Source of the DNA: Macrostomum lignano
Lineage: Eukaryota
Length of the DNA stretch: 36,011 nt
Assembly (NCBI GenBank): GCA_002269645.1
Contig: NIVC01003874.1
Location: 1-36,011, forward strand
Direction: 5' to 3'
Part shown: one piece after another, positions 1 to 35,529 of the stretch
Position numbering within the stretch: the stretch's first letter is position 1
Layout of the letters: every line of letters starts with the position of its first letter
Made by a program: the position numbers and the translations under genes
Notes under the pieces: generated by a model
Told to the model about the DNA's origin: nothing
Seen by the model: only the letters and a program-made list of their open reading frames with translations
The model's database searches: none

Positions 1-171
1 TCCCACCGGAACAGCACTCTGCGTTTTTATTAACCCACGTTTTAGCAAGAGCAAACTGGTTTTTTCTGACTCTAATCAAAACAGAATAAACGTACCGGAT
101 GAAGAAAACCAACATAACAAGCCAAACACAATGAGTTGAAAGTAACAAAAAAATCTGGTGCCTGCTTTCAT
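1..171 (-). CDS. 5' end (signal-peptide exon 96-171 and start of CUB1 exon 1-18) of a third paralog running off the window
   Basis: ATG at 171-169 gives MKAGTRFFCYFQLIVFGLLCWFSSS, then a 77-nt GT-AG intron (19-95), then ECCSGG. Colinear with 15636-15806. Confidence 0.8.
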
Positions 172-3500: not shown

Positions 3501-4223
3501 TAACATCACGGCTTATAAACTTCGATTATAAACAGGAAAATTTACCTGAAAACTAATTTTTCGAATTTTATAAAGAAACAAATAAAGTCAAAGCCGCTGT
3601 ACACTCCTGTGTGAGGGTTGCTCGTGTGTATGCCTGCTCAGGGGAGTCGCTTAAGTGACAATGTCGCTTAAACGCCTAAAGTGCGCCAGGGTTGGATGCA
3701 CGCAGCCTTTAAATAACCGTATGGTAAATCGTTGCTTCTAGACGACAGAAAACTATGCGTGTGCACGTATCGTGCAGTTTTGTATTAACATGCAAAGGAA
3801 GTAAAACGGACATTTCATTTTATCGCAAGCTTTTCGACGGTACCTGTTGTTCCGTTGGCAACGGAATTAAAATGTAAAAACAAACTGTTGCAACACAGAG
3901 CTGCTGCATTAGGAAATTACGTTGTCATTCGTAACTTTTCGCAAGTACAAATATCCAGTATGAAATATGGTATTCTAGCGTACAGTCACCGAGAGTCAAG
4001 GCTGAAAATTATTTGACTTTTTTTACGCTATCACCTTGATTGCTGAGTGTACAGGCTGAAGTTTGAAGGCAACGAAAATGGAATAAAAAGGTAGACGAGA
4101 AGAATAAACAGACGATGCTGTCATGTGTCAGGCATGCATAAATTTCCATCCCAACTTTTTTTAAACGGAGCGTTTCTGTGAAGACACTTATATACGAGTA
4201 ACAATACAACAGCTTCAGCTTAT

Positions 4224-4649
4224 TTGCAGGCTGTCACCAAACATCAAACTTCATCTGCATTCGCACATTCAGGTGACCTCCTGGCGTGTAAATTTGTCGA
4301 CTGGAAGCTAAGCAGCATCAAGACTCTGCATTTGCTGGACACGGCGGGCAAGGCAGAATGCGTTCAGGTTCGCGGTGGTGCAATGCAGGTGGTGCAAAAG
4401 CCTGCCAGCGTGCTTGCCTACTCTTCCAGCATGGCCGGGATTGACCATTTGGACGCCTCAATGCACCCGTATCTCGCGAACCGAAAGAGCATGCGCTGGT
4501 TCCACACGCTGGGATTTCATCTTCTTGCGATGCTTGTGCGGAAATCGTGGGTGATCTACCGACAGTCCGGTGGCACAAAGACCTTTCTGCATTTTGAGGC
4601 TGGCAATAAAGAGTCTGGTGAAGGACACTGGGACCAGTGGGACAACTAA
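4224..4649 (+). mobile_element. piggyBac-family transposase C-terminal fragment
   Basis: KPASVLAYSSSMAGIDHLDASMHPYLANRKSMRWFHTLGFHLLAMLVRKSWVIY matches the PGBD pattern KP...YN..MgGVD..D....Y...rk..kW..... Truncated at the 5' end by the inverted-repeat arm. Confidence 0.85.
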
Positions 4650-5210: not shown

Positions 5211-5532
5211 TAGAGAGGAGAGAGTAGAGAGGAGAGAGGGTAGAGAGGAGAGAGGGTAGAGAGGAGAGAGGGTAGAGAGGAGAGAGGGTAGAGAGGAGAG
5301 AGGGTAGAGAGGAGAGAGGGTAGAGAGGAGAGAGGGTAGAGAGGATATAGGGTAGAGAGGAGAGAGGGTAGAGAGGATATAGGGTAGAGAGGAGAGAGGG
5401 TAGAGAGGAGAGAGGGTAGAGAGGAGAGAGGGTAGAGAGGAGAGAGGGTAGAGAGGAGAGAGAGAGGGAGAGAGGGTAGAGAGGAGAGAGGGTAGAGAGG
5501 AGAGAGGGTAGAGGGGAGAGAGGGTAGAGAGG
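5211..5532 (+). repeat. 16-bp polypurine minisatellite (AGAGGAGAGAGGGTAG)n, about 20 units
   Basis: Read directly from the sequence; it produces the spurious ORF 5210..5680. Confidence 0.95.
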
Positions 5533-6473
5533 AGTGGAGCAATGCTATGTGGGATTGAGTGAAAAACTGTCTTAGTTTTTTGCTTTTTGGGTTCGAAGAT
5601 TTGAAATTCGGAAATTTGAGGTAGCTTAAAGCCACCTTAGTGAATTTTGGGGGAAGGGGGTTACTAGGCCGAAACTTCACATTGCCGAGTATGCTCTTCC
5701 ATAAGGTTCGGCCTAGTGAAAGAGAGTGCTTTTCGGCAAAGTGAAATTTTTGCCTAATGAAAGCGCCCCGTGAATTTGTTTAGGTTGTAAATTTTTTGGA
5801 GTTTGTAATATTTGTACGTTTGTAACTCAAACTGTAATGTGATTGTGAAAGTATATATTTGCTAAAAATACAAACCCTTTCGTTTCAGATGACACACAAA
5901 TCTCGTATTATAGATAGTTACAAGCAGATACTGTTGTTCATTGTAGTAAATGTAAGACAGGACAAGTATGCAAAACAGATTGGGCGTCGTTGTTGAAAGG
6001 CTAAACTTTGTAATTAAAATGTAAAAAATATAGTAACTGTAACATTCACATGGGTAATAACGGCTTAATAAGCCTTAAAAGAGTTAGTAACCAGTTAATG
6101 AAACACGTTGATAAAAATTTAGTTCAATTATTCGAACATATAGTTCTCAACACTCAAATTTGATCAATTTAACTGTCGTTAATGCTGAAATTATTGACAC
6201 ACCCAACTCAATGCCAAGAAATGAACGAACTTTATTTTCAGAAGAAAGCTCTCTTGGGGGTTCGGATCTGTGGTGTCTTTTGGGAATTTAGCTGGCCTCT
6301 ATTCAGTGGTGTTAGCGCAGAAAAAGGGTGACAGGGGATACAGAAAATGCAAGGGAATGGGGAATCCTATATTTTCGATATTGTACAGGCCCACTCCCTC
6401 CACTCCCCAAGGGATTCAAATTTCTGGCTGGGCCAAATATGTTCCTTTTCGAAGCCATTCATTGAAGGGGGGT

Positions 6474-6630: not shown

Positions 6631-8276
6631 AACTTTAGCAAGAGACTTCACCAACTACTTTTAGCAAAAAGCGGGCAGTGTGTTGGTGGGGAAGTATGTA
6701 TCAGTTTATTTCGAACTGTATTGCGAGAGAGATATTATAGCGTTTGTCTTCTTTGTCCATGAGTACGGGCTTGTAAAAACGATTGATTTATCAACTGCGA
6801 GCTTTTGTATGACGGACACTGCATACTTGCCACTAGAATTAGCTGCAAGGCTTCCCGGAATATGGGTGCAGAAGGGAGGTGTTGCCGTCCATTCCGCAGA
6901 CCCCTGGCGATCACGGGCAGCTGGTGCTACTGTGTCGCGCAGGGAGATCCCGTGGTGCCGGTGTTCTCAGTTCTGTCCCCCTCCAGGAGGTGAGTGATCG
7001 GTCGCCCGGTAGCCCTGGACGAGGTGGCAGAAATTCCCGTGCTTGAAACTGTCGAAAAAATCCAGATTTGCGCCGCGGTGAGCCTGTCCTAAATAAAGAG
7101 GAGGCATTCTAAAATTAAATGCTTCCTTGAACTGACCAGCCATGACCTGAGATAGCCGTGGTCACCGCCTTGGTGCCAGACTGCGGTTGATTCCAAGCAA
7201 GGCCTGCGGAGGGCAGGAGGAAGAGGGGATCCTGCCGGCAGAGCTGAACTATCGGCGGTTATCTCTCCTTGTGCTTCGTTGCACCCCCACAAGTGGTTAC
7301 AATAGCAGTGGGATGGAGGCCACAGGCAGGGGGTCAAAGAAAGGGCTAATTGGTGATTGGTCATCTCGTTGTTGGGTTGATCCGAGTGCCCGGGGATCCG
7401 TTGTTGGCAAAGTAAATCATGTTGATCAAACGCTCCCCGAATAAGTTCAGTTCGCTTTGTCATCAGAAGGCCTATTTTGAGTGGCTCTTAATGATCCTGC
7501 TTTCAAAAGAACAACCGTTCTTGATCGAGTTAAGTTTATTGACAGTTTAATTTATTTTTGCGAGCAATTTACCTAGAAACCATAATTGACAATCTGTATG
7601 TATCTAAGGATGAATAGAAACTTAAATAGGAGAATTCAGAATGATAAATTTGAATTTCTGTTGGAATTTCACAGACTCATACAATTTTGTTAATATGCAA
7701 TAAAAAGCTTTGCACATCAACTCGAAATTGAGATAATTAATTTTGCAAAAATCAATATTTTATGGTATTTTGTGTTGACAATTTGTTCATATTCGTTCAT
7801 TCATTAACTGATGACTTTTGAGGTTGATTGTTCTGCAAACAGAAAAACTTGATTTCTTCTATGCATGAACGAAGATCTATGGATGGATGAATATCAGTTA
7901 AAACCGCGCTGTTAGTCAAGGAACTTTAGTGTCTTTTTAGATTTAAATTTTAGAGACTAGATTACGATCAACAATAAGCGCGTGGGTATGTTCAAATTTC
8001 ATTATCGTAAAAAATGTATTCATTCGCGGAGTAATTTTAATGTTTGTTAAAACTCACGAAGTTGCCTTGAAATCGGGGTAGGTTCAATTTCATTGCGTCA
8101 GCTGCCTTGGCTTCCCACCGCTTCATCGATCTGATCGTCCTGACGAGAACGCATTTAAAAACTATGGGGTCGTACTCTAAAGCTGTCGTAGCGTAAGTTT
8201 GATCGTACGTAGGAACTTTTACACTGTGGAGATAGGAGTTAAAAACGATCTTATCGTATATATCGGGCCCTATATA

Positions 8277-8430
8277 CTCAGTAACACCGAAAAGTCTCCA
8301 TCACCGAAGATTCCTTCGAGGTCGTCACTTTTGAGAGTGCAGGTAAAGTCTCTGAATCTTTGCGAGTGACGCAACTTAGCTACGCCACGACAGACTTGAG
8401 TTGATGAATGAAGTGGGGGGAGCGGTGTGC
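8277..8430 (+). mobile_element. Left end of a related Tc1-like element
   Basis: TA followed by ctcagtaacaccgaaaagt resembles the Tc1 TIR at 10524. The motif ttgcgagtgacgcaac is shared (8360-8375 and 10578-10593). Confidence 0.45.
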
Positions 8431-9204: not shown

Positions 9205-9501
9205 CCAGCGAGAGACATTACTGCCCATTCCCACGACTCCCCTGAGCACAATCGCACGGACACGTACGCAGTCACACACACAGGCATACTCTCACACAGG
9301 AGTGTACAGCAGCCCCAACTTTATTTAATTATCGTCTGGAATGTACACTTCACTGCGCCTTGTGATTGGCCCTCAAGGCTGCTAATTGCATGAGCAGAGC
9401 CAAGCTGAGATTCCAATTAGGACTTCAATAAATGTGACTGCACTTTGACTCGAGCCTGGGCCGCAGACACTACCTCACTATAGATCACTGGGCTACGGCC
9501 C
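9205..9501 (-). mobile_element. Diverged member of the same SINE family (unit B copy 25015-25400)
   Basis: GGGCCGTAGCCCAGTG head and a shared body (ttggctctgctc.tgcaatta..gccttgagggcc...aaggcgcagtgaagtgtaca). No clear TSD. Confidence 0.7.
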
Positions 9502-9739
9502 GGTGTAATTAAATTTTTATTGCTTGAGCCATCAAGCGAAATGCGAATGCCTAGTGTCAGGTACGAGCGTACATTACATTTTCCGGTTTATATTTGAAGT
9601 TTATAAGCCCTTGCACCCCTTGCACTGCGGCAAGGAAGAATTTAATGTTTCACATGATAAAAATTGGCCAAAATTCTGTTGGCAAAATGGATGCGCAGCA
9701 TTTTTATGCATAAGCTTTGGTGTTCATGTACAGCTAGAC

Positions 9740-9990
9740 TGTTTGCGAATAAACTGCAGAGCCTAAACGTTTTAGAAAGCCATATTATCAGTAAATTAAT
9801 CGGTTGATGTATTTCAGTAAATAACTTTAATAGCTTGTAGTATAACTCTTATAGTACAGTCTGTATAATTGTTACAGCGTTTCTATTCGTTATTGAATAT
9901 ATTAATAAACTTCGTCACTAGACTCCACCCAAACGCTGACACCGAATCTTAGAATTTCATGCGGTTTTAATGAATACCCGAGTCCAAGCG
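9740..9990 (-). mobile_element. Inverted third copy of the YR-element 3' tail (unit B copy ~25640-25910)
   Basis: ttacagcgtttctattcgtta...cactagactc...gctgacaccgaatc is the reverse complement of 2125-2205 (gattcggtgtcagc...gagtctagtg...aacgaatagaaacgctgtaa). Confidence 0.65.
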
Positions 9991-10523
9991 AACTAAGCTA
10001 ATACTTTTTCTAAGCTAGAGCTACTATACTATCTTTAGTAGGCTGTCACTTCTGTAAGGACAAGAAACATCTATAAATAAAATAACTTATAATAGCAAAC
10101 GGATATACATGTTGCTAAAGACTTGATGCTAAAGATTGATGAAATTTACAGACTTATTAATTTTAAATCTAAATTTCAATTGCAATAATCTCGCAATAAC
10201 TTTAAACACCAAACCAAACAGACGAAAAACTTCAGTAGAAATAAATTGGCGTGATTATACTTCTTATCAAATATTTTAAAACCGTCGATTCGCAATTTCA
10301 AATTTTCATCAAGGTCAAAAACACAGAATTTAATCAATCATTTTATCTATTGGATTGCAAAGTTATTTATTGATGATCAATGTTGTTTTAATTAGTGCTC
10401 TACAGTTGAGCATTACCTACCTTGAGTAAATGACAAGATAATTGGTTTTACTTTATACTATATAAAGCATCAGGACCATCAGGAGTACAGGAGAGGCTAT
10501 TACATCGGGTTAATATTGATATA

Positions 10524-11143
10524 CTCAGCAACAGTCAAAAGTTCCACCCCACTAAGCGTGATGATTTTTTTAACTTATTGCGAGTGACGCAACCTACGGC
10601 ACGCGCAAAGCTTATTGCCGCTTGGGGGTGGCTTGGGTCTGCTTAATGGTCCAGGCCTGGACATTAAGCAGACCTAGCTCAGGAACAACGCCCCGCCACA
10701 CCAAGCCGATGCTGTTAGTCAACTGAAGGAACAGCTACAGCTGCGCACTCTGCGCTGGCCTTCCCGGTCCCCAGACATGAATCCCATCGAGCATGTCTGG
10801 GACTTCCTAAAACGTAGCATTCGAAAAGAGAATCCACCACAGAATGTTGCGGAGAGCTCTGCGTCATGCCATTGAAAACGCTTCGGAGCGGCTTCCCCAG
10901 GACTTTCTGCGCCGCCTCATCATTGGGATGCCCCGCAGAGTCGTCGCACTTACTGCGTGCGAGGGGATCCCACACGCATCGCGATTCTAACTAAATATTG
11001 CATAAAAAATTATGATTTTACTACGAGTATTGATATTCAATCAACTTTCCCTTCCTCGCGGCGGCTTAGTTGCGTAACTTGAGGGTTGAATTGTGTGTGA
11101 AGTTTTTGCAATTTGGAGGGTAGAACTTTTGACTGTTGCTGAG
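10524..11143 (+). mobile_element. Internally deleted Tc1-type (DD34E) transposon
   Basis: TIR ctcagcaacagtcaaaagttc at the left end (after TA) and its reverse complement at ~11116-11143. After a 1-nt frameshift the peptide reads QDNAPPH...WPSRSPDMNPIEHVWDFLKR, with 34 residues between D and E. The right-hand TA is not preserved. Confidence 0.88.
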
Positions 11144-11443
11144 TCAAAAGTTGCCGAATTTATCAGATACATATACACCTAATGTTGAAAGTAATTACTG
11201 ACTTTTAAGCAAAGTAAAACTATAGCAGCAATAGACCTAGGTATTTAAAAATTTTAGAAAAAGTTACTGCCCTAGATTTTTAGGTTTTTTAGCTCGTATC
11301 GATCGTCTTCTGTATGTAGTAATTAGTCATTTTTGGTGGCTCTTTCACGTGACGTAAACTCCGGTTGAGTCATCAGGCTGAAAGTCGGATGCAAGCATGA
11401 TTAATAATTTGACATTGCTGAAAATATGATGAAGTCTGGTGCC

Positions 11444-14400
11444 TCAAATCACATTAAAGCTGCTTACAATGCCTGCTGATTCGCCATAATATTGGTTACT
11501 GACTGTCATTTGCATCTTCATTGACTCATTCACTACTGACGCATCCGGAGATTTTTTCCAAGGTGGCCACCGACCAGATCTCATCAGCACAAAGCAGGCC
11601 ACCACTGCTACCAGTGCAATGATGGCGAGAACAGCCGTAGTTGATGAAGCTGCTAGCAGTGGCCGCTCCCAGACTTCGGCCAGCCTCGTCTCTCCTGTTG
11701 ATGGAGGCGATATTTAAAGCAGGGCTGCTTTCTCGTGTATAACATCTGAAATCAGCTGCGAAACTCACCAAAACCCTTTTCGGGAAGCACGAGCAGCGCA
11801 GAGCTGCCGTTGAGCAGGCGGCACCTCACGGTGGAACCCGCTACGTCTGATGGCTGAGCGAACGCCAAGAACTGCGACATCACCGAGCTGAAGCACTGCG
11901 GCCCGATGGGCTTCGAGACATCCTGAAGTTAAGCAAAGCATACTATCTTGCACAAATAGCGAGCTACATAATGCTGCCAACAGACAAAAACAACCTTCTT
12001 TATTAGCGTCGCGGGAATCGAATAGTTAGTAGCCGTCCTCAGCTCACAGCGGTGCCTCACACTGGGACAGGCGTGTTCGGAAACCGCACGGAACTGAATT
12101 GCTCCGTTGAGTAGCCACAGCTCAGGATCAATCAACTTAAGCTGTAAGTCATTTGGTTCAACTGAAATCAATAAAACGGAGAAACGGTTGTAAATGCATT
12201 AAGAACGCATGTTTTTATGAGCTGTTATGAAATAAATGAATCACAAGAGAGGTCAACAGCAATACCTGGAGGTAATTGGCTGAATTCAATCGAACCGAGC
12301 ATTCCTGGCACAGAGAATGCGCAAGACACATTGCGGCTGCACACTTGACGCTGCCATCGTCCAAAAAACTGGAATACTTTTCCCGAAGATGTCGAGACGA
12401 TTCGATCCTGTGGTAGCAGGTAAAACGACGAGTGAACTTCATAATTGATGGTGTATGCATATTGTGGGAAATATGGCTAGTACTTCGCACAAGAAGTATA
12501 TATCAAATAGTATCAACCTTAATAGACATTAATCGGATGCCAAATATGTTTAGCCAAAATTATTATTTCTTTTTGCCTTCATTAAGTATCAAATATTTTG
12601 ATTATATCTTACAACACGGATCGGGACTTCGATGGTTCCATTCTCGCACTCCTGGTGCAGCCGACATTTCGCTGACAGGCCTCGGATGCTTGCAGCTGTT
12701 GTTAATAAAATGCGCATTGGAGCACCCGCAGCGATCTCAGTAGACTCTGGGAATCTCCATTGAATTTCTCGAACAGCTGATATAAGGAAATGACCATTGT
12801 AAGGAGCCGATCATAATAATACCTTTCTTTATTCGACATTCCAAACATTGAATAAATCAGCTGGTACATATGACATACGTTGAACAAATGATTTAAACTC
12901 TGCAAACCTACTCTCGCAAATGTCACCTTTTTACTTCATTTAAAAACAGAGTCAAATAAGTTAATTATTTGATTAAAAATTAATGAAATTAATCACAAAA
13001 ATAAATCAGTTAAAATCTTTCGTAATCGTTCTCGCTTTTTTTCTATATCGCTAATCATGCTTCTACGCTCGTATGAAGATTCTATAGTTATATATATTAT
13101 ATATTCTAATATATTATATTTATATATATATATATTATATATATATATTTTTATGTATATTTATATATATATACTGTTATATATTCTAACGTAGTGATTT
13201 TATGCGCATACATAAAATTCCTGTTTTTAATGAGCTCTATATACATTATTTATATTATACGCATATATTTATGCATTAACTTCATAATCTTAACTCAACT
13301 CACGCAGTTGCATAGCCGGCAGAGAATAGTTGACTGTTCCGGCTTGCTTGTAACAAATTATCGTAGAATTGACTGTGTCGATGAGCTCAGCCAGCAGAGT
13401 AAAATCTGTTTGAACTCTGCTCACACACTGAGAAATACGTGGCTGTGATGCTTGCTGAAGTTTTGACGTAGCAATTGTATCAGAATAAAAATACGCTAGC
13501 TGGGTATTGTAAATTGAAGGAAAATACAATTGCGTATATCTGCATATCAGTACGGGCCTACAGTGTACATCGTTTAGTTGTACACGCCTATCATAGCAAT
13601 TACTCTAAGTATATTATATTATGCTAAATATTTTAACTACGCATTGTTACATTATTCTTACCCGCTTCACTTGCACAGCAGTGACTGCGCTTCCATTGAA
13701 AAGCCTCAGCTCGCAGCGATGCCTCACTCGCCGACACTCGGCTTGAGACACAGCTCGAAACCGAATCAAACTATCTGAGAGGCTCCACAGCTCAGGCTTT
13801 ATCAGGCTGATTTCAAGTGAAGCTGGCTTAACTGAAAGTTATTCATATGTATGAAGGAAACTAGAGCAGGATAATCAAAATCTGCTACAGTTACTGAACC
13901 GCTTTGCTAATATTGCAATACAGACACTTCGCTTCTTCAAAAACATCTATGCAGAGTCTCAAAAACTGATTGAAGAAAGTTGTTTACCATCAGGTGCTGG
14001 AGTCGATTCAATCAGTTCATTGATACCGCTGCCACGGAATCTGCACGTGATGTTTCGAATGCAGACAGCAGTGTCTGAGATGATTCCAGAAAACAGGTAC
14101 AATTTTTTAACTGATCTTCATTGTGAGTAGATCGTCTGGAGGAATTGCAAAAACAATTCATATATAATCTGAGGCTCTTTAAATTTGTCCAAGCTTTTGA
14201 ATGCAAACTTGAAAGGTCAAGAGATATTACCTTCACTATGCAAAGTTATAAGAAAAACTTAAACCAGTAATTACGCTCGTATATAGCACTTTTTTCGAAA
14301 ATTTAATGCAGATAAATGCCCGGCTTACGGAATTCATTGCGATCTCCGAAGTTTGCCTTCCACATTCAAGATCTAAGTAACACCTAGCTGATACATTTCG

Positions 14401-15806
14401 ATCCATAGAAAGCAGTGAAAAACTGAATTTCGAGCCACCTATGGCCATTCTGGTCCATTTTGAAAAGATCCACAGTAATTCATGATCATCTGTAAAGAGT
14501 ATCAAACTGAGTAAATGTAGCAGCGTTAAGATTTTTTGTGGAAGTTGATAATATTTATGTAATCTAAAGAGAATTTATAAGAGTTCTCTTCTCATTGCTT
14601 AAAACTAATTATCCATTATAATCGATAGGCCGATGGCGCATAATCCGTAGTACAAATAACCTGCATCAACATAAACAATGTTGAGACTTATTCAGATTTA
14701 TGTAACTACGAGTAACTATGGAAACTATGTTGCTTCTCTGTCCGTATCTGGCCGAGAAAAGAAACTATAAACATAAGATTGCATAACTTTTAACTTATAT
14801 TTTCTGCACTGAACAGTTTAACTTCTGAATTGAATAAAACTGAAAAAACTGCCAGATACTGTTGACGTCTTGTATCACTCACGGACATTGAACTCAAATT
14901 CGAACCCTTCACGGACAACAGAGCCGTCAGTAGTGAAAATTAGGGTAACGCTATGCGAAAACGTGTATGACGGATGAAGAATTCTATGATTGCCTGAAAT
15001 CGCTTGCAGAGCCGTGTGTTGATATCGCGGAACAAGTCCTGAATATATCCTAAGATAGTCGCGGCCAGATTCCGTGTTGAACTTTGTGAATCGAATGAAA
15101 ACACGGGAATTTCTGGGCACGTAAATACTCCAAGCTTTTTTGTAGTTATTGCGGTAGGACCCGACATCTGGATGGCTCCGTCTGACACCGCTTCTCTGCC
15201 GAATGACCTCAGTAGCAGCTGAAATTCCATTTTCATCCGAGATCAAATAAATCAGCAAAAGTCAACCAGAGTGCTGTTATAAACGTAAGGCATAAAATTC
15301 ACCTGGAATCGATTCCCACTGGCGTTCGTAAGAAAGCCGAAATCCGGATCTCGTGTGAAACCCGTCACTTCGAAACCGCACAACAAAGGGCGAATTCACC
15401 CAGAACTCAGACTCAGTCGCGTTTGCATGCACAAGTCGAAACTTCTCTGAGCTGCTTGATGCGTAGATTGCGCTTTCATAAATTAAAACTTTGTCGCAGC
15501 ACGAATCCACATCCAGCTTGCTGAATCGGATTCGGCTGACACCACGTGGTCGAATAGACCAGGAAACATCCAAATTGTTTGAATACTGGCCTCCAGAGGA
15601 GGGGCACGCGATCGTTCCAGATGACGAGTAAAGCGTCCTACCGGAACAGCACTCTGCGTTTTTAGTAACCCACGTTTTAGCAAGAGCAAACTGGTTTTTT
15701 CTGACTCTAATCAAAACAGAATAAACGTACCGGATGGAGAAAACCAAAATAACAAGCCAAACACAATGAGTTGAAAGTAACGAAAAAATCTGGTGCATGT
15801 TTTCAT
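11444..15806 (-). CDS. 13-exon gene for a type I membrane protein: signal peptide, 2 CUB domains, four ~105-aa unrecognised Cys modules, TM, short tail; in-frame TGA in exon 5
   Basis: Manual splice model. Exons (minus strand): 15731-15806, 15303-15653, 14883-15218, 14329-14489, 13988-14135, 13662-13831, 13304-13454, 12879-12926, 12613-12776, 12266-12407, 11995-12161, 11769-11922, 11444-11694. All 12 introns are GT-AG and phase-compatible, and the exons total 2319 nt = 773 codons. N-terminus MKTCTRFFRYFQLIVFGLLFWFSPSECC; TM TAVLAIIALVAVVACFVLM followed by RSGRWPPWKK; many N-x-S/T sequons. TGA at 14118-14120 is in frame. Confidence 0.8.
13086..13186. repeat. Degenerate (TA)n tract in intron 7 (unit B ~28994-29096)
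   Basis: Read directly; it carries the 2-bp indel that shifts the offset from 15908 to 15910. Confidence 0.85.
14883..15218 (-). other. CUB domain 2 (exon 3), cysteine-free; same in copy 2 at 30793-31128
   Basis: SG...SHP...YRNNYKKAWSI...VFIRFTKFNTESGRDYLRIYSG...LIFTTDGSVVREGFEFEF follows the CUB consensus; phase 1-1 exon. Confidence 0.9.
15303..15653 (-). other. CUB domain 1 (exon 2); same in copy 2 at 31213-31563
   Basis: CSGRTLYSSSGTIACP...YSNNLDVSWSI...IRFSKLDVDSCCDKVLIY...FRSDGFHTRSGFRLSY follows the CUB consensus; phase 1-1 exon. Confidence 0.9.
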
Positions 15807-16823
15807 CGCAGTCTGGTTCAGCTGCAGGGCGCTGCGGGCATGGCATACGAGCTAGTAAGCGGAAAACTGCTGTTTCAGTGTTCCTGTTCGTATTTATGCC
15901 CGTTAATCTTCTTTCCACTAAATTAAATCAACTTCCAGTAAACAGGCCGAACATCAAATTTAGACAGCTTTTAATTAAAGTATATAAAACCAAATCTGGC
16001 AATATCTAGGCAACTCTTCCACTAATTTCGAGGCTAATTTTGACACAAGACTTCCAATTTTCGCTGATTTTGGTTTCGAGTTTATCCATATAGAACGTAA
16101 TAAATCATAAATATTGTAATACAGAATGCCTTGAAGGTAAAAGTGTGCCGTATCTCAACACTTCATTTCAGAAATCACCCCCTGAAGTATTTCTGGTGTT
16201 TTGGTCATATCAATATAGAGAATTGATTTCATATCTTCATAATTTGCTATCAAAGCATAGCGAAGTGTAGTACATTTAAACTATAATGGTCTTACAAGAA
16301 ATCTCAGGTGAAAACTAAAACTATTGACTGGGTTGGATGGTGCTTTATGGAAAGCAATGAAAACTTGTTAAGACAGTGTACGAGGACTTCTGTCGCTTAA
16401 GTCGAATGCTTTGCTAATTTTAGAACAGATAGAATGTTTAATGAATCTGTGGAGTCGTTTTTTCCTAAAACACATCACATGTCTTCCAACTGCAAAACAA
16501 CTTATTTTTAGTTAATTAAAATGGAACACGACATAATGCTCATACAATGATCATACGTGTTTTTTAGCTTTGAGTAGGACAGAATTTACAAATTTGAACC
16601 TATAAGCTGAAGCTGTTGTATTGTTACTCGTATATAAGTGTCTTCACAGAAACGCTACGCATAAAAAAGTTAGGATGGAAAATTTATGCATGCATGACAT
16701 ATGACAGCATCGTCTGTTTATTCTTCTCGTCTACCTTTTTATTCCATTTTCGTTGCCTTCAAACTTCAGCCTGTACACTCAGCAATCAAGGTGATAGCGT
16801 AAAAAAAGCCAAATAATTTTCAG

Positions 16824-16929
16824 CCTAACCCTAACCCTAACCCTAACCTAACCTACCTACCTACCTACCTACCTACCTACCTACCTACCTACCTACCTAC
16901 CTACCTACCTACCTACCTAAATACCTACC
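16824..16929 (+). repeat. CCCTAA / CCTAA / (CCTA)n repeat, unit B
   Basis: cctaaccctaaccctaaccctaacctaacctacctac... Confidence 0.9.
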
Positions 16930-17353
16930 CATTGTACCAGCTTACTTTTTCGTATCTTGCAGATGCTCCAGTCTGTAAATCATTTCCCTCTTTAAAAATG
17001 TCCCTAATAAATCATGTAATTAGACTATTCCGGCTTCATTGGGAACAAGCTTACTTCGTAAAAGCAATTTTTACAGTTTTGTTGAAAACTGCCGCAGTAT
17101 TTTTATTATAAACGAGTTATTATAATTACAGGTATGACATCTCTAAGCTAATAATATTTTTTTGCGTAATCTACTCTTTGCAACATTGTTAGACGCTGAC
17201 CCGAAATCGGGCCATTCCCGTCGGCAACGGGTGTGCTGAGATGATGGTTGATTTGCCATAGACTTTTGCAAACGCGGGCCGTTCGCTTCGGGGCTGGCGG
17301 GATGACCCGAAATCGGGCCATCTATGTAGCTCGTTCAAAGACAGTGCTGATCG

Positions 17354-18890
17354 GTGAGCGCATCCACACCAGCTCCAGCTCCCGGTCATGGGTCCGAGCT
17401 CAGCAGCCGCTCTCAAATTGCGCCCCGACATCTCTGGCAGCTGAATCTAATTCTCGATACGTCTCAGAGCTTTCCCGTATTCTTAGTCCGTCAGAGCCGC
17501 CATTTTGGTGGCCTTCTGACTCAGTGGAGGTTCGCCACCGCCTGCAGCGTTTGTTTCGCAAGACCGGAATGGAAATGTAGAGTGTTCTACCTCCCGTTAA
17601 AAAAGGTTAAAAGAAGATAATCGTATAATGCTACTATAAGTAAGTAAGTACACGCATGTGCGCCTAAGCTTTGAATGAATCACGCTACCAGGAAAAGATG
17701 TTACCAAAATGATACGCCATGAGCCATTTTCCCCTTTTAGCGCAACACGTGGTTTGTAATGATGCTATTTTGGATCAAAAAGTTGCCTATAAATACAAGC
17801 GGTCCGAAGCGGACCAGGAGCCAACTCCCGACGAGAGGAGAAGCTCCGAAGAGGAAGCCTTAGGAGGACTTCCTGATCACCAAGTCAATCGAGACTCGGT
17901 CGAGTTGTTGCGGTAAGCCTTCCTTATTTGCGCCCGTTGTGTTAGAGACGTCTCGCTCAAGTCTATTGAGACTTGAGTCTATTTGAGTCTGTTGAGACTC
18001 TTGAGTCTGTTTAGACTCCATTGGTTGCAGTCTCCAGAAGGACTGCCCCTGATAGATCTTAGAGGACTATCAGTGGTTTCCGGAGCCATACCTAGAGTGC
18101 ATAAAGGCACTGCTAGAAGAAGGAGGCTTAATTCAAACCGCTGTTCGGCGCAGGGTACCCATTGTTGATACGAGGCCTCTGATTGGTCCTGACTGAAGAT
18201 ACCGGCCGGAGGAACTTATCGGAAGTACAAGAGGAACCAGGACCAGAGCAACTGAAGAATCAAGGCGCCTGATCTACGAGATCACATAGAGACAAGCGAG
18301 ATCTACTCGAAGACTACAGAAGAGATATCTCCAAGCGACGTCAACGTAAGAAGTACCTTTAATTGACTTACTGGGCTGCCTAGCTATTGAGCTAGAAGTG
18401 AGTGTTCTTTGATTACCATAAGTCGGGTAATAAGGGACACATCAGAAACTTTCAGCTTCTCTACGCACTCGCTCCGCCGTGGTGGAGCGACATCTGCTTT
18501 CAATGCTCGGAGATTGGCGCAGCTCGGCGATTTCGCGGGTACATCTCTGATGGCAGTGCCGGTAACCTAGCGAAGGTCAGAACCTAGCGGCTCTTCGGTC
18601 TATGTCTGCTGGCCTCGTTCATTTATACTCGCTGTCTTTCACGTTATGCTATAATAACAGTCTTCGTCACTTCGCCTAACCCTAAATAACTTCTACTATT
18701 CGAAGTCAGCGTTTAGGATGAGTCTAGTAAATTGAGTTTATAAATTTCGTTAACGAATAGATACACTGTAACAGTTATTTAGATTGTTATACAGAAATCG
18801 TAATATTATTTTTTTAGTGAAATGCATCAGCTGATTAGTTTAACCGACAATACATGTATGGCCTTTTAAAAACTTCAGGTTCTGCAGCTA
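17354..18890 (+). mobile_element. Chimeric tyrosine-recombinase fragment and tail (unit B), split by an 869-bp insertion; same in unit C at 33264-34800
   Basis: VEVRHRLQRLFRKTGME breaks at 17575 and resumes at 18445 (gaaactttcagcttctctacgcactcgctccgcc). At gtctgctggc/ctcgttcatttatac it jumps from the first YR copy to the tail of the second. Confidence 0.75.
17576..18444. mobile_element. Probable solo LTR, 869 bp
   Basis: TG...CA ends flanked by a 4-bp GAAA duplication (17572-17575 and 18445-18448). The empty site has a single GAAA in unit A (1772-1775). No recognisable coding content. Confidence 0.65.
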
Positions 18891-19009
18891 AAACAATCTA
18901 GTTACAAATTAACACCAAACTAGTGCATAAAAATTCTGCGTGTCTTTTGTTTTTCCAGCAAAACTTTGGTTCATCTATATTATTTGAAAAAAAGGGAACA
19001 TCACGGCTT

Positions 19010-19372
19010 TTTTATTAGAAACAGGGGGGTTGTGTGCACCCTGGCGCACTTTAAGCGACATAGGCACACAACCGGCGAGAGGCATTACTGCCCATTCCGC
19101 CGACTCCCCTGAGCAGGCATACAAGCGCGCGGATACGTTACGCAGGCACACACTCACACAGGACTGTACAGCGGCCCTAACTTTATCAATTGTTAGGCAT
19201 GTACACTTCACTGCGCCTTGGGGGGTTGGCTCTCAAGGCCGTTAATTGCACAAGCGAGCCAAGCCGAAATTCCAATTCAGCCCCAAATTAATGTGACTGC
19301 ACTTGGAATCGAGCCTGGGTTGCTCTCACACCAGAGCCTGCGCTAGACCGCTGGACTACGCCCCCCCCCCCT
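19010..19372 (-). mobile_element. Full-length tRNA-derived SINE with 13-bp target-site duplication
   Basis: Minus strand GGGCGTAGTCCAGCGGTCTAGCGC...AGCAACCCAGGCTCGATTCC gives A-box and B-box-like motifs; 3' end AATAAAAAA; TSD aacatcacggctt at 18997-19009 and 19373-19385. Confidence 0.8.
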
Positions 19373-20107
19373 AACATCACGGCTTATAAACTTCGATTAT
19401 AAACAGGAAAATTTACCTGAAAACTAATTTTTCGAATTTTATAAAGAAATAAATACAGTCAAAGCCGCTGTACACTCCTGTGTGGGGGTCTGCTCGTGTG
19501 TATGCCTGCCCAGGGGAGTCGCTTAAGTGACAATGTCGCTTAAACGCCCAAAGTGCGCCAGGGTTGGATGCACGCAGCCTTTAAATTACCGTATGGTAAA
19601 TTGTTGCTTCTAGACGACAGAAAACGATGCGTGTGCACGTATCGTACACGTCTGCAGTTTTGCAAAGGAAACATGCAAATAAAGTAAAACGGACATTTCA
19701 TCTTATCGCAAGCTTTTCGACGGTACCTGTTGTTCCGTTAGCAACGAAATTAAAATTAAAAAACTAACTGTTGCAACACAGAGCTGCTGCATTAGGAAAC
19801 TAAGTTGTCATTCGTAACTTTTCGCAAGTACAAATATCCAGTATGAAAAATGGTATTCTAGCGTACAGTCACCGAGAGTCGAGGCAGAAAATTATTTGAC
19901 TTTTTTTACGCTATCACCTTGATTGCTGAGTGTACAGGCTGAAGTTTGAAGGCAACAAAAATGGAATAAAAAGGTAGACGAGAAGAATAAACAGACGATG
20001 CTATCATATGTCATGCATGCATAAATTTTCCATCCTAACTTTTTTTAAACGGAGAGTTTCTGTGAAGACACTTATATACGAGTAACAATACAACAGCTTC
20101 AGCTTAT

Positions 20108-20530: not shown

Positions 20531-21106
20531 GTGGGGCGTACAGTGGGCGGTGTGCGCCCTCGCGGCCGCCTGTGAGGGCAGTCGGTAAATATTTTTATTT
20601 ACACTTTACAATGAAATATGATCTGATTTTTCAATGAGAAATGGTGATTTTTTACTCGTAATACTTTATATAGCCTTAATATGGACGATTTTTTTAATCC
20701 TAATCGAAGCCGCCCGGTGATCGCCCGGCGGCCTATGAGGCGGCAACCTAAGTTTGGCGTGTTTCATGTTCAAGGCAGCTTTATTTAATAGCACTGCCCT
20801 TTCAGCCTAGCGGGAGAACCGTTTTTTATCACAATAATAGGTGGTTACTCTTTACAATAAACGTTAGGGCTATATTTGCTGTTGCCTAGTGCCAACATTG
20901 TGAAATAATTTTTTTCGGAAAGATGTGTGAAGTTTCATAAAATTTAAATGCGCATCAGACTACTTTTAGTAGCGTAGAGCTAAGAGCCCCCGAGAACAAC
21001 TTTTTGTTTGCAGTCGAAAGAAGATTAAAAGCATCAAATTGACGATAAATTTACACCTGTAAATATTTGCGCTTTTAGAAAGCGGGCTTTTAGAAAAGAA
21101 GTAGGG

Positions 21107-21319
21107 AGAGGAGAGAGGGTAGAGAGGAGAGAGGGTAGAGAGGAGAGAGGGTAGAGAGGAGAGAGGGTAGAGAGGAGAGAGGGTAGAGAGGAGAGAGGGT
21201 AGAGAGGAGAGAGGGTAGAGAGGAGAGAGGGTAGAGAGGAGAGAGGGTAGAGGGGAGAGAGGCTAGAGAGGAGAGAGGGTAGAGAGGGAGAGGGTAGAGG
21301 GGAGAGAGGGTAGAGAGGA
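21107..21319 (+). repeat. Same 16-bp polypurine minisatellite, about 13 units
   Basis: Read directly; shorter than the unit A array. Confidence 0.95.
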
Positions 21320-24300
21320 GTGGAGCAATGCTATGGGGGATTGAGTGAAAAACTGTCTTAGTTTTTTGCTTTTTGGGTTTGAAGATTTGAAATTCGGAAA
21401 TTTGAGGTAGCTTAAAGCCACCTTAGTGAATTTGGGGGGGGGTTACTAAGCCGAAACTTCACATTGCCGAGTATGCTCTTCCATAAGGTTCGGCCTAGTG
21501 AAAGAGAGTGCTTTTCGGCAAAGTGAAATTTTTGCCTAATGAAAGCGCCCCGTGAATTTGTTTCGGTTGTAAATTTTTATGGAGTTTGTAATATTTGTAC
21601 GTTTGTAACTCACACTGTAATGTGATTGTGAAAGTATATATTTGCTAAAAATACCAACCCTTTCGTTTCAGATGACACACAAATCTCGAAGTATAGATAG
21701 TTACAAGCAGATACTGTTGTTCATTGTAGTAAATGTAAGACAGGACAAGTATGCAAAACAGATTAGGCGTCGTTGTTGAAAGGCTAAACTTTGTAATTAA
21801 AATGTAAAAAATATAATAACTGTAACATTCACATGGGTAATAACGGCTTAATAAGCCTTAAAAGAGTTAGTAACCAGTTAATGAAACACATTGATAAAAA
21901 TTTAGTTCAATTATTCGAACATATAGTTCTCAACACTCAAATTTGATCAATTTAACTGTCGTTAATGCTGAAATTATTGACACACCCAACTCAATGCCAA
22001 GAAATGAACGAACTTTATTTTCAGAAGAAAGCGCTCTTGGTGGTTCGGATCTGTGGTGTCTTTTGGGAATTTAGCTGGCCTCTATTCAGTGGTGTTAGCG
22101 CAGAAAAAGGGTGACAGGGGATACAGAAAATGCAAGGGAATGGGGAATCGTATATTTTCGATATTGTACAGGCCCACTCCCTCCACTCCCCAAGGGATTC
22201 AAATTTCTGGCTGGGCCAAATATGTTCCTTTTCGAAGCCATTCATTGAAGGGGGGTTTCACAAACTCGAAATTTCACAACGTCGAAAGCACCTTCTTTCA
22301 CACGATCGAAATTTCACAAGGTCGAAATTTCATAACATCGAGAACTCAAATAGCAACCACTTTCACAAGGTCGAAACTTCACAAGGTCAAAATTTCACAA
22401 CATCGAATTCGAAAACTTTAGCAAGAGACTTCACCAACTACTTTTAGCAAAAAGCGCGCAGTGTGTTGGTGGGGAAGTATGTATCAGTTTATTTCGAACT
22501 GTATTGCGAGAGGATATTATAGCGTTTGTCTTCTTTGTCCATGAGTACGGGCTTGTAAAAACGATTGATTTATCAACTGCGAGCTTTTGTATGACGGACA
22601 CTGCACACTTGCCGCTAGAATTAGCTGCAAGGCTTCCCAGAATATGGGTGCAGAAGGGAGGTGTTGCCGTCCATTCCGCAGACCCCTGCGATCACGGGCA
22701 GCTGGTGCTACTGTGTCGCGCAGGGAGATCCCGTGGTGCCGGTGTTCTCAGTTCTGTCCCCCTCCAGGAGGTGAGTGATCGGTCGCCCGGTAGCCCTTAG
22801 GCATGGACGAGGTGGCAGAAATTCCCGTGCTTGAAACTGTCGAAAAAATCCAGATTTGCGCCGCGGTGAGCCTGTCCTAAATAAAGAGGAGGCATTCTAA
22901 AATTAAATGCTTCCTTGAACTGACCAGCCATGACCTGAGATAGCCGTGGTCACCGCCTTGGTGCCAGACTGCGGTTGATTCCAAGCAAGGCCTGCGGAGG
23001 GCAGGAGGAAGAGGGGATCCTGCCGGCAGAGCTGAACTATCGGCGGTTATCTCTCCTTGTGCTTCGTTGCACCCCCACAAGTGGTTACAATAGCAGTGGG
23101 ATGGAGGCCACAGGCAGGGGGTCAAAGAAAGGGCTAATTGGTGATTGGTCATCTCGTTGTTGGGTTGATCCGAGTGCCCGGGGATCCGTTGTTGGCAAAG
23201 TAAATCATGTTGATCAAACGCTCCCCGAATAAGTTCAGTTCGCTTTGTCATCAGAAGGCCTATTTTGAGTGGCTCTTAATGATCCTGCTTTCAAAAGAAC
23301 AACCGTTCTTGATCGAGTTAAGTTTATTGACAGTTTAATTTATTTTTGCGAGCAATTTACCTAGAAACCATAATTGACAATCTGTATGTATCTAAGGATG
23401 AATAGAAACTTAAATAGGAGAATTCAGAATGATAAATTTGAATTTCTGTTGGAATTTCACAGACTCATACAATTTTGTTAATATGCAATAAAAAGCTTTG
23501 CACATCAGCTCGAAATTAATATCATGAATTTTGCAAAAATCAATATTTTATGGTATTTTGTGTTGACAATTGTTCATATTCGTTCATTCATTAACTGATG
23601 ACTTTTGAGGTTAATTGTTCTGCAAACAGAAAAAACTTCATTTCTTCTATGCATGAACGAAGATCTATGGATGGATGAATATCAGTTAAAACCGCGCTGT
23701 TAGTCAAGAAACTTTAGTGTCTTTTTAGATCTAAATTTTAGAGACTAGATTACGATCAACAATAAGCGCGTGGGTATGTTCAAATTTCATTATCGTAAAA
23801 AATGTATTCATTCGCGGAGTAATTTTAATGTTTGTTAAAACTCACGAAGTTGCCTTGACAATCGGGGTAAGGTTCAATTTCAATGCGTCAGCTGCCTTGG
23901 CTTCCCACCGCTTCATCGATCTGATCGTCCTGACGAGAACGCATTTAAAAACTATGGGGTCGTACTCTAAAGCTGTCGTAGCGTAAGTTTGATCGTACGT
24001 AGGAACTTTTACACTGTGGAGATAGGAGTTAAAAACGATCTTATCGTATATATCGGGCCCTATATACTCAGTAACACCGAAAATTCTCCATCACCGAAGA
24101 TTCCTTCGAGGTCGCCACTTTTGAGAGTGCAGGTAAAGTCTCTGAATCTTTGCGAGTGACGCAAATCAGCTACGCCACGGCAGACTTGAGTTAAGGAATG
24201 AAGTGGGGGGAGCGGTGTGCGAGGGTTGGACGGATTAAAGCTACCCGATCAGTTTTCTAGTAATTTTTTTCAGAATTACTAGAAGTTCAAGAGAAATTGC

Positions 24301-25097: not shown

Positions 25098-25232
25098 CTC
25101 TCACACAGGAGTGTACAGCATCCCTAACTTTATTTAATTATCCTCTCACACAGGAGTGTACAGCAGCCCTAACTTTATTTAATTATCCTCTCACACAGGA
25201 GTGTACAGCAACCCTAACTTTATTTAATTATC
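25098..25232 (+). repeat. 45-bp tandem triplication inside the SINE of unit B
   Basis: ctctcacacaggagtgtacagcaNccctaactttatttaattatc x3; single copy in unit A at ~9289-9333. Confidence 0.9.
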
Positions 25233-26437
25233 GTCTAGAATGCACACTTCACTGCGCCTTGTGATTGGCCCTCAAGGCTGCTAATTGCATGAGCAGAGCC
25301 AAGCTGAGATTCCAATTAGGACTTCAATAAATGTGACTGCACTTTGACTCGAGCCTGGGCCGCAGACACTACCTCACTATAGATCACTGGGCTACGGCCC
25401 GGTGTAATTAAATTTTTATTGCTTGAGCCATCAAGCGAAATGCGAATGCCTAGTGTCAGGTACGAGCGTACATTACATTTTCCGGTTTATATTTGAAGTT
25501 TATAAGCCCTTGCACCCCTTGCACTGCGGCAAGGAAGAATTTAATGTTTCACATGATAAAAATTGGCCAAAATTCTGTTGGCAACAATGAGATGCGCAGC
25601 ATTTTTATGCATAAGCTTTGGCGTTCATGTACAGCTAGACTGTTTGCGAATAAACTGCAGAGCCTAAACGTTTTAGAAAGCCATATTATCAATAAATTAA
25701 TCGGTTGATGTATTTCAGTAAAGAACTTTAATAGCTTGTAGTATAACTCTTATAGTACAGTCTGTATAATTGTTACAGCGTTTCTATTCGGTATTGAATA
25801 TATTATATAATATATTAATAAACTTCGTCACTAGACTCCACCCAAACGCTGACACCGAATCTTAGAATTTCATGCGGTTTTAATGAATACCCGAGTCCAA
25901 GCGAACTAAGCTAATACTTTTTCTAAGCTAGAGCTACTATACTATCTTCTAGTAGGCTGTCACTTCTGTAAGGACAAGAAACATCTATAAATAAAATAAC
26001 TTATAATAGCAAACGGATATACATGTTGCTAAAGACTTGATGCTAAAGATTGATGAAATTTACAGACTTATTAATTTTAAATCTAAATTTCAATTGCAAT
26101 AATCTCGCAATAACTTTAAACACCAAACCAAACAGACGAAAAACTTCAGTAGAAATAAATTGGCGTGATTATACTTCTTATCAAATATTTTAAAACCGTC
26201 GATTCGCAATTTCAAATTTTCATCAAGGTCAAAAACACAGAATTTAATCAATCATTTTATCTATTGGATTGCAAAGTTATTTATTGATGATCAATGTTGT
26301 TTTAATTAGTGCTCTACAGTTGAGCATTACCTACCTTGAGTAAATGACAAGATAATTGGTTTTACTTTATACTATATAAAGCATCAGGACCATCAGGAGT
26401 ACAGGAGAGGCTATTACATCGGGTTAATATTGATATA

Positions 26438-27059
26438 CTCAGCAACAGTCAAAAGTTCCACCCCACTAAGCGTGATGATTTTTTTAACTTATTGCGAGTG
26501 ACGCAACCTACGGCACGCGCAAAGCTTATTGCCGCTTGGGGGTGGCTTGGGTCTGCTTAATGGTCCAGGCCTGGACATTAAGCAGACCTAGCTCAGGAAC
26601 AACGCCCCGCCACACCAAGCCGATGCTGTTAGTCAACTGAAGGAACAGCTACAGCTGCGCACTCTGCGCTGGCCTTCCCGGTCCCCAGACATGAATCCCA
26701 TCGAGCATGTCTGGGACTTCCTAAAACGTAGCATTCGAAAAGAGAATCCACCACAGAATGTTGCGGAGAGCTCTGCGTCATGCCATTGAAAACGCTTCGG
26801 AGCGGCTTCCCCAGGACTTTCTGCGCCGCCTCATCATTGGGATGCCCCGCAGAGTCGTCGCACTTACTGCGTGCGAGGGGATCCCACACGCATCGCGATT
26901 CTAACTAAATATTGCATAAAAAATTATGATTTTACTACGAGTATTGATATTCAATCAACTTTCCCTTCCTCGCGGCGGCTTAGTTGCGTAACTTGAGGGT
27001 TGAATTGTGAGTGTGAAGTTTTTGCAATTTGGAGGGTAGAACTTTTGACTGTTGCTGAG
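26438..27059 (+). mobile_element. Tc1-type (DD34E) remnant, unit B
   Basis: Near-identical to 10524-11143. Confidence 0.88.
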
Positions 27060-27516
27060 TCAAAAGTTGCCGAATTAATCAGATACATATACACCTAATG
27101 TTGAAAGTAATTACTGACTTTTAAGCAAAGTAAAACTATAGCAGCAGTAGACCTAGGTTAAAAATTTTAGAAAAAGTTACTGCCCTAGATTTTTAGGTTT
27201 TTTAGCTCGTATCGATCGTCTTCTGTATGTAGTAATTAGTCATTTTTGGTGGCTTTTCACGTGACGTAAACTCCGGTTGAGTCATCAGGCTGAAAGTCGG
27301 ATGCAAGCATGATTAATAATTTGACATTGCTGAAAATATGATGAAGTCTGGTGCCTCAAATCACATTAAAGCTGCTTACAATGCCTGCTGATTCGCCATA
27401 TATTGGTTACTGACTGTCATTTGCATTTCACCGACTCATTCACTACTGACGCATCCGGCGATTTTTTCCAAGGTGGCCACCGACCAGATCTCATCAGCAC
27501 AAAGCAGGCCACACTG

Positions 27517-32733: not shown

Positions 32734-32839
32734 CCTAACCCTAACCCTAACCCTAACCTAACCTACCTACCTACCTACCTACCTACCTACCTACCTACCT
32801 ACCTACCTACCTACCTACCTACCTACCTAAATACCTACC
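32734..32839 (+). repeat. CCCTAA / CCTAA / (CCTA)n repeat, unit C
   Basis: Same as the unit B copy at offset +15910. Confidence 0.9.
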
Positions 32840-35282: not shown

Positions 35283-35529
35283 AACATCACGGCTTATAAA
35301 CTTCGATTATAAACAGGAAAATTTACCTGAAAACTAATTTTTCGAATTTTATAAAGAAATAAATACAGTCAAAGCCGCTGTACACTCCTGTGTGGGGGTC
35401 TGCTCGTGTGTATGCCTGCCCAGGGGAGTCGCTTAAGTGACAATGTCGCTTAAACGCCCAAAGTGCGCCAGGGTTGGATGCACGCAGCCTTTAAATTACC
35501 GTATGGTAAATTGTTGCTTCTAGACATCT

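Follow-up and report, generated by a model that had tools for sequence, protein, structure and literature searches.

A tandemly repeated CUB-domain gene of Macrostomum lignano whose complete copies share a premature stop codon

The described proteins nearest by architecture to the gene considered here are the neuropilins, the CUZD1-type proteins that combine CUB and zona pellucida (ZP) domains, and the subunits of NETO/LEV-10 type, and their defining non-CUB domains are FA58C and MAM, ZP, and LDLa, respectively. Cubilin, another CUB protein, is a peripheral protein of 27 CUB domains without a transmembrane (TM) helix. We analysed a stretch of 36,011 nt from the flatworm Macrostomum lignano (contig NIVC01003874.1 of assembly GCA_002269645.1, positions 1 to 36,011 of the forward strand), which is called the window throughout. 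It contains a gene for a protein with two CUB domains, and the non-CUB domains listed above were searched for in this protein and found absent. In the reading we favour and hold to be probable, the window is a tandem repeat of ~15.9-kb units, each with a copy of a Macrostomum-restricted gene for a type I membrane protein. The family would have the order signal peptide (SP)-CUB-CUB-(X-Y)n-TM, where X and Y are two kinds of module, and its complete copies in the window are interrupted.

Only two copies in the window, B and C, are complete. For the model of copy B, two M. lignano paralogs encoded on contigs of the same assembly, P0001 (PAA61708.1 / BOX15_Mlig000815g2, 965 amino acids, aa) and P0002 (PAA76314.1 / BOX15_Mlig014562g1, 759 aa), were threaded onto their own loci and the structure was then carried over to the window. 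It turned out that copy B is a spliced gene on the minus strand, running from 15806 to 11345, with 13 exons and 759 codons plus stop. The repeat, the three copies and the parts of copy B are as follows.

1-36011, no strand: tandem segmental repeat (direct-repeat spacing, self-BLAST)
11345-15806, minus strand: copy B, complete gene, with exons at 15806-15731, 15653-15303, 15218-14883, 14489-14329, 14135-13988, 13831-13662, 13454-13304, 12776-12613, 12407-12266, 12161-11995, 11922-11769, 11694-11468 and 11377-11345
15731-15806, minus strand: exon 1, predicted signal peptide MKTCTRFFRYFQLIVFGLLFWFSPS (hydrophobic core read from the sequence)
15303-15653, minus strand: exon 2, CUB1, residues ~26-142 (Pfam CUB; alignment to cubilin 3KQ4)
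14883-15218, minus strand: exon 3, CUB2, residues ~143-254 (Pfam CUB; cubilin alignment)
13988-14489, minus strand: exons 4 and 5, module X1, residues 255-357, 309 nt for both exons, phase 1-1 (paralog-guided model, module alignments)
14118-14120, minus strand: in-frame TGA, codon 314, inside X1 (paralog comparison)
13304-13831, minus strand: exons 6 and 7, module Y1, residues 358-464 (paralog-guided model, module alignment)
12266-12776, minus strand: exons 8 and 9, module X2, residues 465-566 (paralog-guided model, module alignments)
11769-12161, minus strand: exons 10 and 11, module Y2, residues 567-673 (paralog-guided model, module alignments)
11468-11694, minus strand: exon 12, juxtamembrane WERPL, TM helix 692-712, and the larger part of the cytoplasmic tail, with NQYY (paralog-guided model)
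11345-11377, minus strand: exon 13, C-terminal PDDSTGVYVT and stop, 33 nt (peptide 100% conserved in P0001 and P0002)
27257-31716, minus strand: copy C, also complete, with 13 exons as in copy B; TGA at 30028-30030; four 1-nt deletions within 27380-27602 of exon 12 (alignment to copy B)
1-171, minus strand: copy A, 5' fragment made up of exon 1 (171-96), an intron and 18 nt from the start of exon 2, with a distinct signal peptide, MKAGTRFFCYFQLIVFGLLCWF (paralog-guided model)

Each of the 12 introns of copy B begins with GT and ends with AG, and a pyrimidine-rich tract stands before most acceptors. The exon lengths (1 to 13) are 76, 351, 336, 161, 148, 170, 151, 164, 142, 167, 154, 227 and 33 nt. 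Compared with P0002, 12 of 13 lengths are equal, with in-frame differences of 3 nt in P0002 exons 3 and 12; compared with the corresponding exons of P0001, 12 of 13 are equal and the counterpart of exon 11 differs by 6 nt in frame. Between copy B and the P0002 locus, the exons are 91.6% and the introns 79% identical. The paralog exon junctions have transcript support, because the annotation of GCA_002269645.1 was built from RNA-seq-based transcript assemblies (PMC5730564). Besides, a de novo length-maximising search returned an open GT-AG chain of 877 codons, which was spurious and over-extended, and the paralog-guided model was preferred; phase compatibility alone is therefore weak evidence. 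All module boundaries in the model are in phase 1 (cumulative lengths of 76, 427, 763, 1072, 1393, 1699 and 2020, all equal to 1 modulo 3), the classical layout of shuffled extracellular modules.

A preliminary description of this locus, made from the sequence alone, had given the architecture as SP-CUB-CUB-(four modules)-TM-tail, which is correct by the two Pfam CUB matches, the TM helix at 692-712 and the paralogs. It had also noted that the open reading frame (ORF) track shows the two CUB exons, and indeed the two long ORFs in the region are these exons. Its 13 exons with GT-AG borders stand as well, but the paralog-guided coding sequence (CDS) has 759 codons instead of 773. It had placed the end at 11444, a stop met only if exon 12 is read on into intron 12; the CDS ends at 11345, and the 33-nt exon 13 falls outside that range. 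It had further taken the frame to be open, and this does not hold for either complete copy.

In both copies, codon 314 (exon 5, module X1) is TGA, at 14120-14118 in B and at 30030-30028 in C. P0001 and P0002 read CAG CGA at this site, where the window reads CAA TGA. In the alignment with the homologous module X2, coding residues stand opposite the TGA, and therefore the stop breaks a domain and not a dispensable linker. As assembled, copies B and C cannot encode the full-length receptor. On inspection by hand, no in-frame acceptor was seen 3' of the TGA within exon 5, and the phase-1 donors of exon 4 were weak ones only. Skipping exon 5 alone would shift the frame, whereas skipping exons 4 and 5 together (309 nt, phase 1-1) would be frame-neutral. 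Exact look-ups of both possible truncated products found no database entry.

The interrupted gene could still be functional in two ways, with a secreted CUB-CUB protein of 313 aa as its product or, if exons 4 and 5 are left out in splicing, a CUB-CUB-Y-X-Y-TM isoform; we regard this as quite unlikely. It is true that P0009, another M. lignano gene model, has exactly such an exon 3-exon 6 (CUB2-to-Y1) junction (FEFEFNVLDPVSL), that proteins of P0011 type pass from CUB to Y directly, and that the remaining splice sites and exons are all intact. However, the exon-skipped models come from an automatic annotation that also holds out-of-frame segments, and exons 4 and 5 have strong splice sites, which makes their skipping unexpected by default. 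Most likely, the window copies represent a young pseudogene or null copy which was duplicated after the CGA>TGA mutation. At best they would yield a secreted CUB-CUB fragment, cut short by the stop, or, with exons 4 and 5 skipped, an isoform that lacks X1, which is conceivable.

To place the gene among its relatives, we compared it with deposited M. lignano proteins. Relatives at 83-92% identity are all from M. lignano, and the window copies differ from P0001 and P0002 by ~5-8% in the CDS, with a synonymous divergence (dS) of 0.10-0.15. Intact members are built as SP - CUB - CUB - (X-Y)n - TM - short tail, where n ranges from 1 to 3; for example, P0001 has one extra Y-X exon set, which yields a third X-Y unit, while P0014 (PAA75150.1, Mlig034133g1, 592 aa) belongs to a divergent subfamily, ~30% identical, with a single unit. 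Several UniProt models are fragmentary, and two of the models, P0003 and P0007, carry residues exactly as in the window. Between subfamilies that are ~30% identical, the tail motifs WERPL, NxxY (NQYY / NNSY) and VYVT are conserved, and the short tail would couple to sorting or adaptor proteins. In GenBank and UniProt the family is named "hypothetical" or "CUB domain-containing protein". The window gene is thus a member of a deposited but uncharacterised M. lignano family, and not an unannotated discovery. By the naming rule, genes share the Mlig000815 prefix with P0001 when their transcripts are at least 95% identical, and this cluster has at least 8 numbered copies. In positional RNA-seq, Mlig000815.g1 and g8 are labelled "Non-Specific" with low counts, that is, without enrichment in testis, ovary or tail region (supplement of PMC7336406). 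A search of literature and supplements for the gene IDs found only these positional-expression rows of g1 and g8.

Selection was estimated pairwise among three sequences by the Nei-Gojobori ratio of nonsynonymous to synonymous substitution (dN/dS). The ratio is 0.42 for B and P0001, 0.47 for B and P0002, and 0.37 for P0001 and P0002. By segment (CUB, module, tail) it ranges over 0.37-0.51, with the module region reaching up to 0.51. Because the pairwise ratios are 0.37-0.47, this comparison indicates a family that appears to be under purifying selection, somewhat relaxed, and not under diversifying selection, of which there is no sign at this resolution. Copy B is also a mosaic relative to the P0002 locus, with introns 2, 6, 10, 11 and 12 at 95-100% identity and the others at ~67-79%, and this pattern suggests that gene conversion may have occurred between paralogs.

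The window is a head-to-tail segmental repeat over its whole length, with no N bases or gaps from 1 to 36011. In self-BLAST the unit is ~15.6-15.9 kb and ~2.26 units are present, and the spacing of direct-repeat families is mostly 15.6-15.9 kb. One unit consists of one gene and ~11.5 kb of spacer laden with repeats. The preliminary description had counted at least three head-to-tail paralogs; the orientation was right, with a unit of ~15.9 kb, but two copies are complete and the third, copy A at the window edge, has 94 nt of CDS only. It had also ascribed copy-specific variation to them. This variation is small, patchy and conversion-like: copies B and C differ in 22 of 4,606 aligned columns, 15 of which are in exons 11-12 and none in exons 1-10. 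At all 12 substitutions between B and C that lie in 11521-11906, C has the base of the P0001 locus, and the 3' 420 bp of copy C are of P0001 type. Three of the four 1-nt deletions in exon 12 of copy C, plus one at 11342 just past the stop, occur at sites that differ between B-type and P0001-type sequences. These differences fit a conversion tract or a chimeric assembly, presumably together with consensus-polishing errors from mixed paralog reads. The frameshifts of copy C are probably artefacts and were not counted as biological.

Such signs raise the question of whether the copies themselves are an assembly artefact, in which the near-identity of B and C and the copy number would come from mis-assembled haplotypes or homeologs of a hidden-polyploid genome, and fewer copies would be real. 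The segments 9286-19615 and 25185-35525 are 99.5% identical over 10.3 kb (27 gap columns and 23 mismatches), which is in line with such an origin. So are the deletions at paralog-variant sites, which are typical of mixed-read consensus error, and the redundancy of the published DV1 assembly, where 180 Mb (312 Mb including repeats) of 764 Mb lie in duplicated blocks at least 95% identical (PMC5730564). Against it, the window is free of gaps, identity falls to 91-97% in the rest of the units, where indels reach ~750 bp, and copy A has a distinct signal peptide. Moreover, the spacer 3' of P0001 is collinear with the window unit at 95-97% identity, and at the P0002 locus, too, another family member lies in tandem. 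Because of the divergence between units, the distinct copy A and the collinear or tandem paralog loci, at least two distinct tandem units look real, and we consider the artefact unlikely. The tandem clustering of the family looks real, while the exact copy number in the window depends on the assembly.

Two points weigh against our reading of tandem units with interrupted copies. The first is a possible consensus error at the TGA itself, given the signs of mixed-paralog polishing in the assembly, although the difference is a two-base substitution common to both copies. The second is that dN/dS below 1 against the paralogs speaks for little decay, so the window gene could be a segregating null allele and not a fixed pseudogene.

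The preliminary description had inferred an immune or allorecognition function from the amplification and variation. Under this explanation the locus would be an intact, tandemly amplified, diversifying cluster of immune or allorecognition receptors. Several features would agree with it, as the gene encodes a type I membrane protein with CUB domains, the family is lineage-specific and multi-copy, and the number of X-Y units differs among paralogs. Different subfamilies are clustered, as in locus L002, where P0002 is followed 6.5 kb downstream by a gene of P0011 type, and dN/dS of 0.4-0.5 is above what would be expected for most conserved genes. But the nonsense codon is common to both complete copies, which are identical over exons 1-10, and every pairwise dN/dS is below 1, CUB and module segments included. 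The differences that do exist between B and C amount to a single P0001-type patch and deletions at paralog-variant sites. No domain or motif ties the protein to known immune signalling, and Pfam finds no match beyond CUB. M. lignano is a solitary animal, in which, to our knowledge, no allorecognition has been described. In addition, duplication in the assembly is heavy genome-wide (PMC5730564). Since the amplification is a segmental repeat in a highly redundant genome and the variation is near zero, the immune inference finds no support from variation, selection, domains or expression, and we judge it very improbable.

Returning to the favoured reading, the predicted protein runs from the signal peptide through CUB1, CUB2, X1, Y1, X2, Y2 and WERPL to the TM helix and a 47-residue tail encoded by exons 12 and 13. 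A single TM helix is predicted at residues 692-712 (Kyte-Doolittle peak 2.99). There are 11 N-x-S/T sequons in the 759-residue product; of the 23 cysteines, 22 are N-terminal to the TM helix, and 21 of these belong to the mature ectodomain. Pfam CUB (PF00431) matches in two stretches with 58.9 bits (cut-off 21.4), and the paralogs score 62-67 bits; no other Pfam domain was found in the protein. The closest match of the CUB pair among solved structures, by sequence, is cubilin CUB5-8 (3KQ4; E 3.6e-10). The CUB2 motifs FNTE, RDY and TTDG align with FDLE, TDY and LTDG of a cubilin CUB domain (CUB8), while the alignment of CUB1 is ambiguous. We take the aligned acidic positions of cubilin to be the Ca2+ site by which such CUB domains bind basic ligand residues; the Ca2+-binding subtype of CUB is marked by an acidic Glu/Asp/Asp triad with a Tyr. 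By analogy with cubilin, C1r/C1s and MASP, the CUB pair, distal to the membrane, would contact a protein ligand, and acidic residues that coordinate Ca2+ would probably mediate the binding. At the first position of the canonical CUB motif C-D-Y-L, which is Cys in P0001 and P0002, the window copies read Arg (CUB2 stretch ESGRDYLRIY, 15074-15076 region). This Cys is probably unpaired and dispensable, because the divergent subfamily also lacks it in CUB2.

For the four modules, X is ~103 aa long with two C-x5-C pairs, and Y is ~107 aa long with four cysteines and a VRHRCELR core; X and Y (~105 aa) have four cysteines each, 8 per X-Y unit. X1Y1 and X2Y2 are 36% identical (E 1e-33), which points to an internal duplication. 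We ran Pfam at E<=10, and no family was returned for any of the four modules or the tail. Profile searches of the PDB with X and Y gave chance-level matches only (best E 0.021). With hhalign, X against Y and CUB against X and Y reached a probability of at most 1.1%, that is, no detectable kinship. In two word-indexed searches of 5.8 billion sequences, one with a draft of the protein and one with the module region, the modules occurred only in M. lignano. An exhaustive phmmer (HMMER) scan of 1.84 billion representatives found M. lignano only, plus one low-complexity chance match; its query, the CUB-less model P0004, covers Y in frame and, of X, the second (A) half but not the first (D) half. 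One multiple sequence alignment that included single-exon fragments put X onto Y wrongly and was dropped.

Structure prediction, which the preliminary description had suggested alongside HMMER and Foldseek, was run on paralogs. AlphaFold2 models of P0002 (3 sequences) and P0010 (5 sequences) had a mean confidence (predicted local distance difference test, pLDDT) of 39, with X beta-rich and Y essentially unmodelled, and the module models are unusable. Foldseek with the poor paralog model retrieved only proteins with CUB pairs (neuropilin, PCPE-1, cubilin, C1r/C1s, MASP, NETO2), and this result was not applied to the modules. That X and Y are unrecognised modules holds at the sequence level. The earlier statement that no family with such an architecture was known is right in that the modules match nothing in Pfam or the PDB and occur in M. 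lignano only, and wrong in that paralogs were already in GenBank and UniProt. A full-length match to a characterised family was not found either, only uncharacterised M. lignano paralogs.

The modules, Cys-stabilised, N-glycosylated by prediction and beta-rich only in the low-confidence models, may form a disulfide-stabilised stalk, the length of which would shift by duplication of the four-exon, phase-1/phase-1 X-Y unit. We also give little weight to a further idea, which seems rather improbable, that X and Y are two new extracellular folds defining a Macrostomum-specific receptor family. Such a family would grow by tandem duplication, X-Y unit duplication and gene conversion, and its task would be recognition of a kind specific to the lineage (of mate, sperm, prey, microbe or self), with the TGA copies being part of birth-and-death turnover.

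As for the spacer, the preliminary description had called this DNA rich in transposable elements. Of this, what is supported is a piggyBac-type remnant, satellites and dispersed repeats. The remnant is the following feature.

4224-4649, plus strand: piggyBac-type transposase remnant, located between gene copies in the spacer and recurring in the other units (Pfam PF13843, E 3e-4, 20.6 bits)

Its 20.6 bits are just under the gathering score of PF13843 (22.4). The Pfam scan of spacer ORFs found this remnant only, and a recombinase-like ORF at 1541-1897 was without a match. This ORF has an HSLRRGGAT-like motif, which recalls tyrosine recombinases, and is located in a 3.4-kb segment flanked by an inverted repeat pair of ~206 bp (772-976 and 3999-4223, 98.5% identical). 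The segment between these inverted repeats may be a decayed mobile element. A 16-bp satellite (TAGAGAGGAGAGAGGG) occurs in ~20 copies at 5211-5534, with a counterpart near 21100-21400; the GC-skew peaks of the 5-6 kb and 21-22 kb bins fall on this satellite, which also gives rise to a spurious minus-strand ORF of 156 aa. Besides, there is an (ACCT)n microsatellite at 990-1104 in the spacer, and a (TA)n-rich tract at 13089-13182 in intron 7 of the gene. An element of ~1.5 kb (~90.6% identical) is found at 1033-2536 of the window, 6866-8327 of locus L001 and 6910-8403 of L002. It sits 1-3 kb 5' of the gene at all three loci, and its orientation relative to the gene is inverted in the window compared with L001 and L002. 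It may be a dispersed repeat, or else a local inversion has taken place. In L002, the divergent P0011-type member lies at 20819-22571, ~6.5 kb downstream of P0002 on the same strand, and its identity to P0011 is 96% in a 28-residue alignment and 78% in one of 69 residues.

Should the family be functional, it would contribute a CUB-pair receptor that has two orphan Cys-rich modules, and the tuning of length by duplication of a four-exon phase-1 unit would be a clear-cut case of module shuffling in a flatworm used as a model. M. lignano is amenable to RNA interference. It also supports transgenesis (PMC5730564). Three cautions follow for similar loci: a phase-compatible exon chain can conceal an in-frame stop, near-identical tandem copies are the norm in the M. 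lignano assembly and are partly assembly-dependent, and amplification alone is no pointer to immune function.

Compared with known systems, the window protein resembles Neuropilin-1/2 in being a type I protein with an N-terminal CUB pair, several modules of ~100-150 aa, one TM helix and a short tail. Neuropilins (CUB-CUB-FA58C-FA58C-MAM-TM-short tail) are also the top Foldseek matches of the paralog model, through the CUB pair; the full-length TM-scores of ~0.15 are meaningless. The window protein, in contrast, has no match to FA58C (PF00754) or MAM (PF00629) at E<=10, and its C-terminus is GVYVT and not SEA. CUZD1 and other proteins with CUB and ZP domains share two CUB domains, a Cys-rich region of ~210-260 aa, a TM helix and a short tail. 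However, the window family has no match to PF00100 at E<=10, no ZP structure is among the PDB profile matches, no furin-type site (R-x-K/R-R) is present in residues 660-692, and the X-Y unit is repeated 1-3 times. Cubilin is the best sequence match among solved structures and the acidic motifs of CUB2 align with it, but only the CUB fold is in common. NETO1/2, LEV-10 and SOL-1, which are CUB-containing auxiliary subunits of ion channels, are likewise type I proteins with at least two CUB domains and a short tail, and NETO2 is among the Foldseek matches. The window protein differs from them by having no LDLa (PF00057) match, and X and Y are not in those families. Unlike invertebrate immune or allorecognition clusters, the window copies show no sign of diversifying selection or high variation between copies (dN/dS at most 0.51 in any segment among the three sequences compared, and B equal to C in exons 1-10). 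The closest system of all is that of the M. lignano paralogs, which have the same domain order and 13-exon plan as the window gene and keep CGA at codon 314, where both window copies have TGA.

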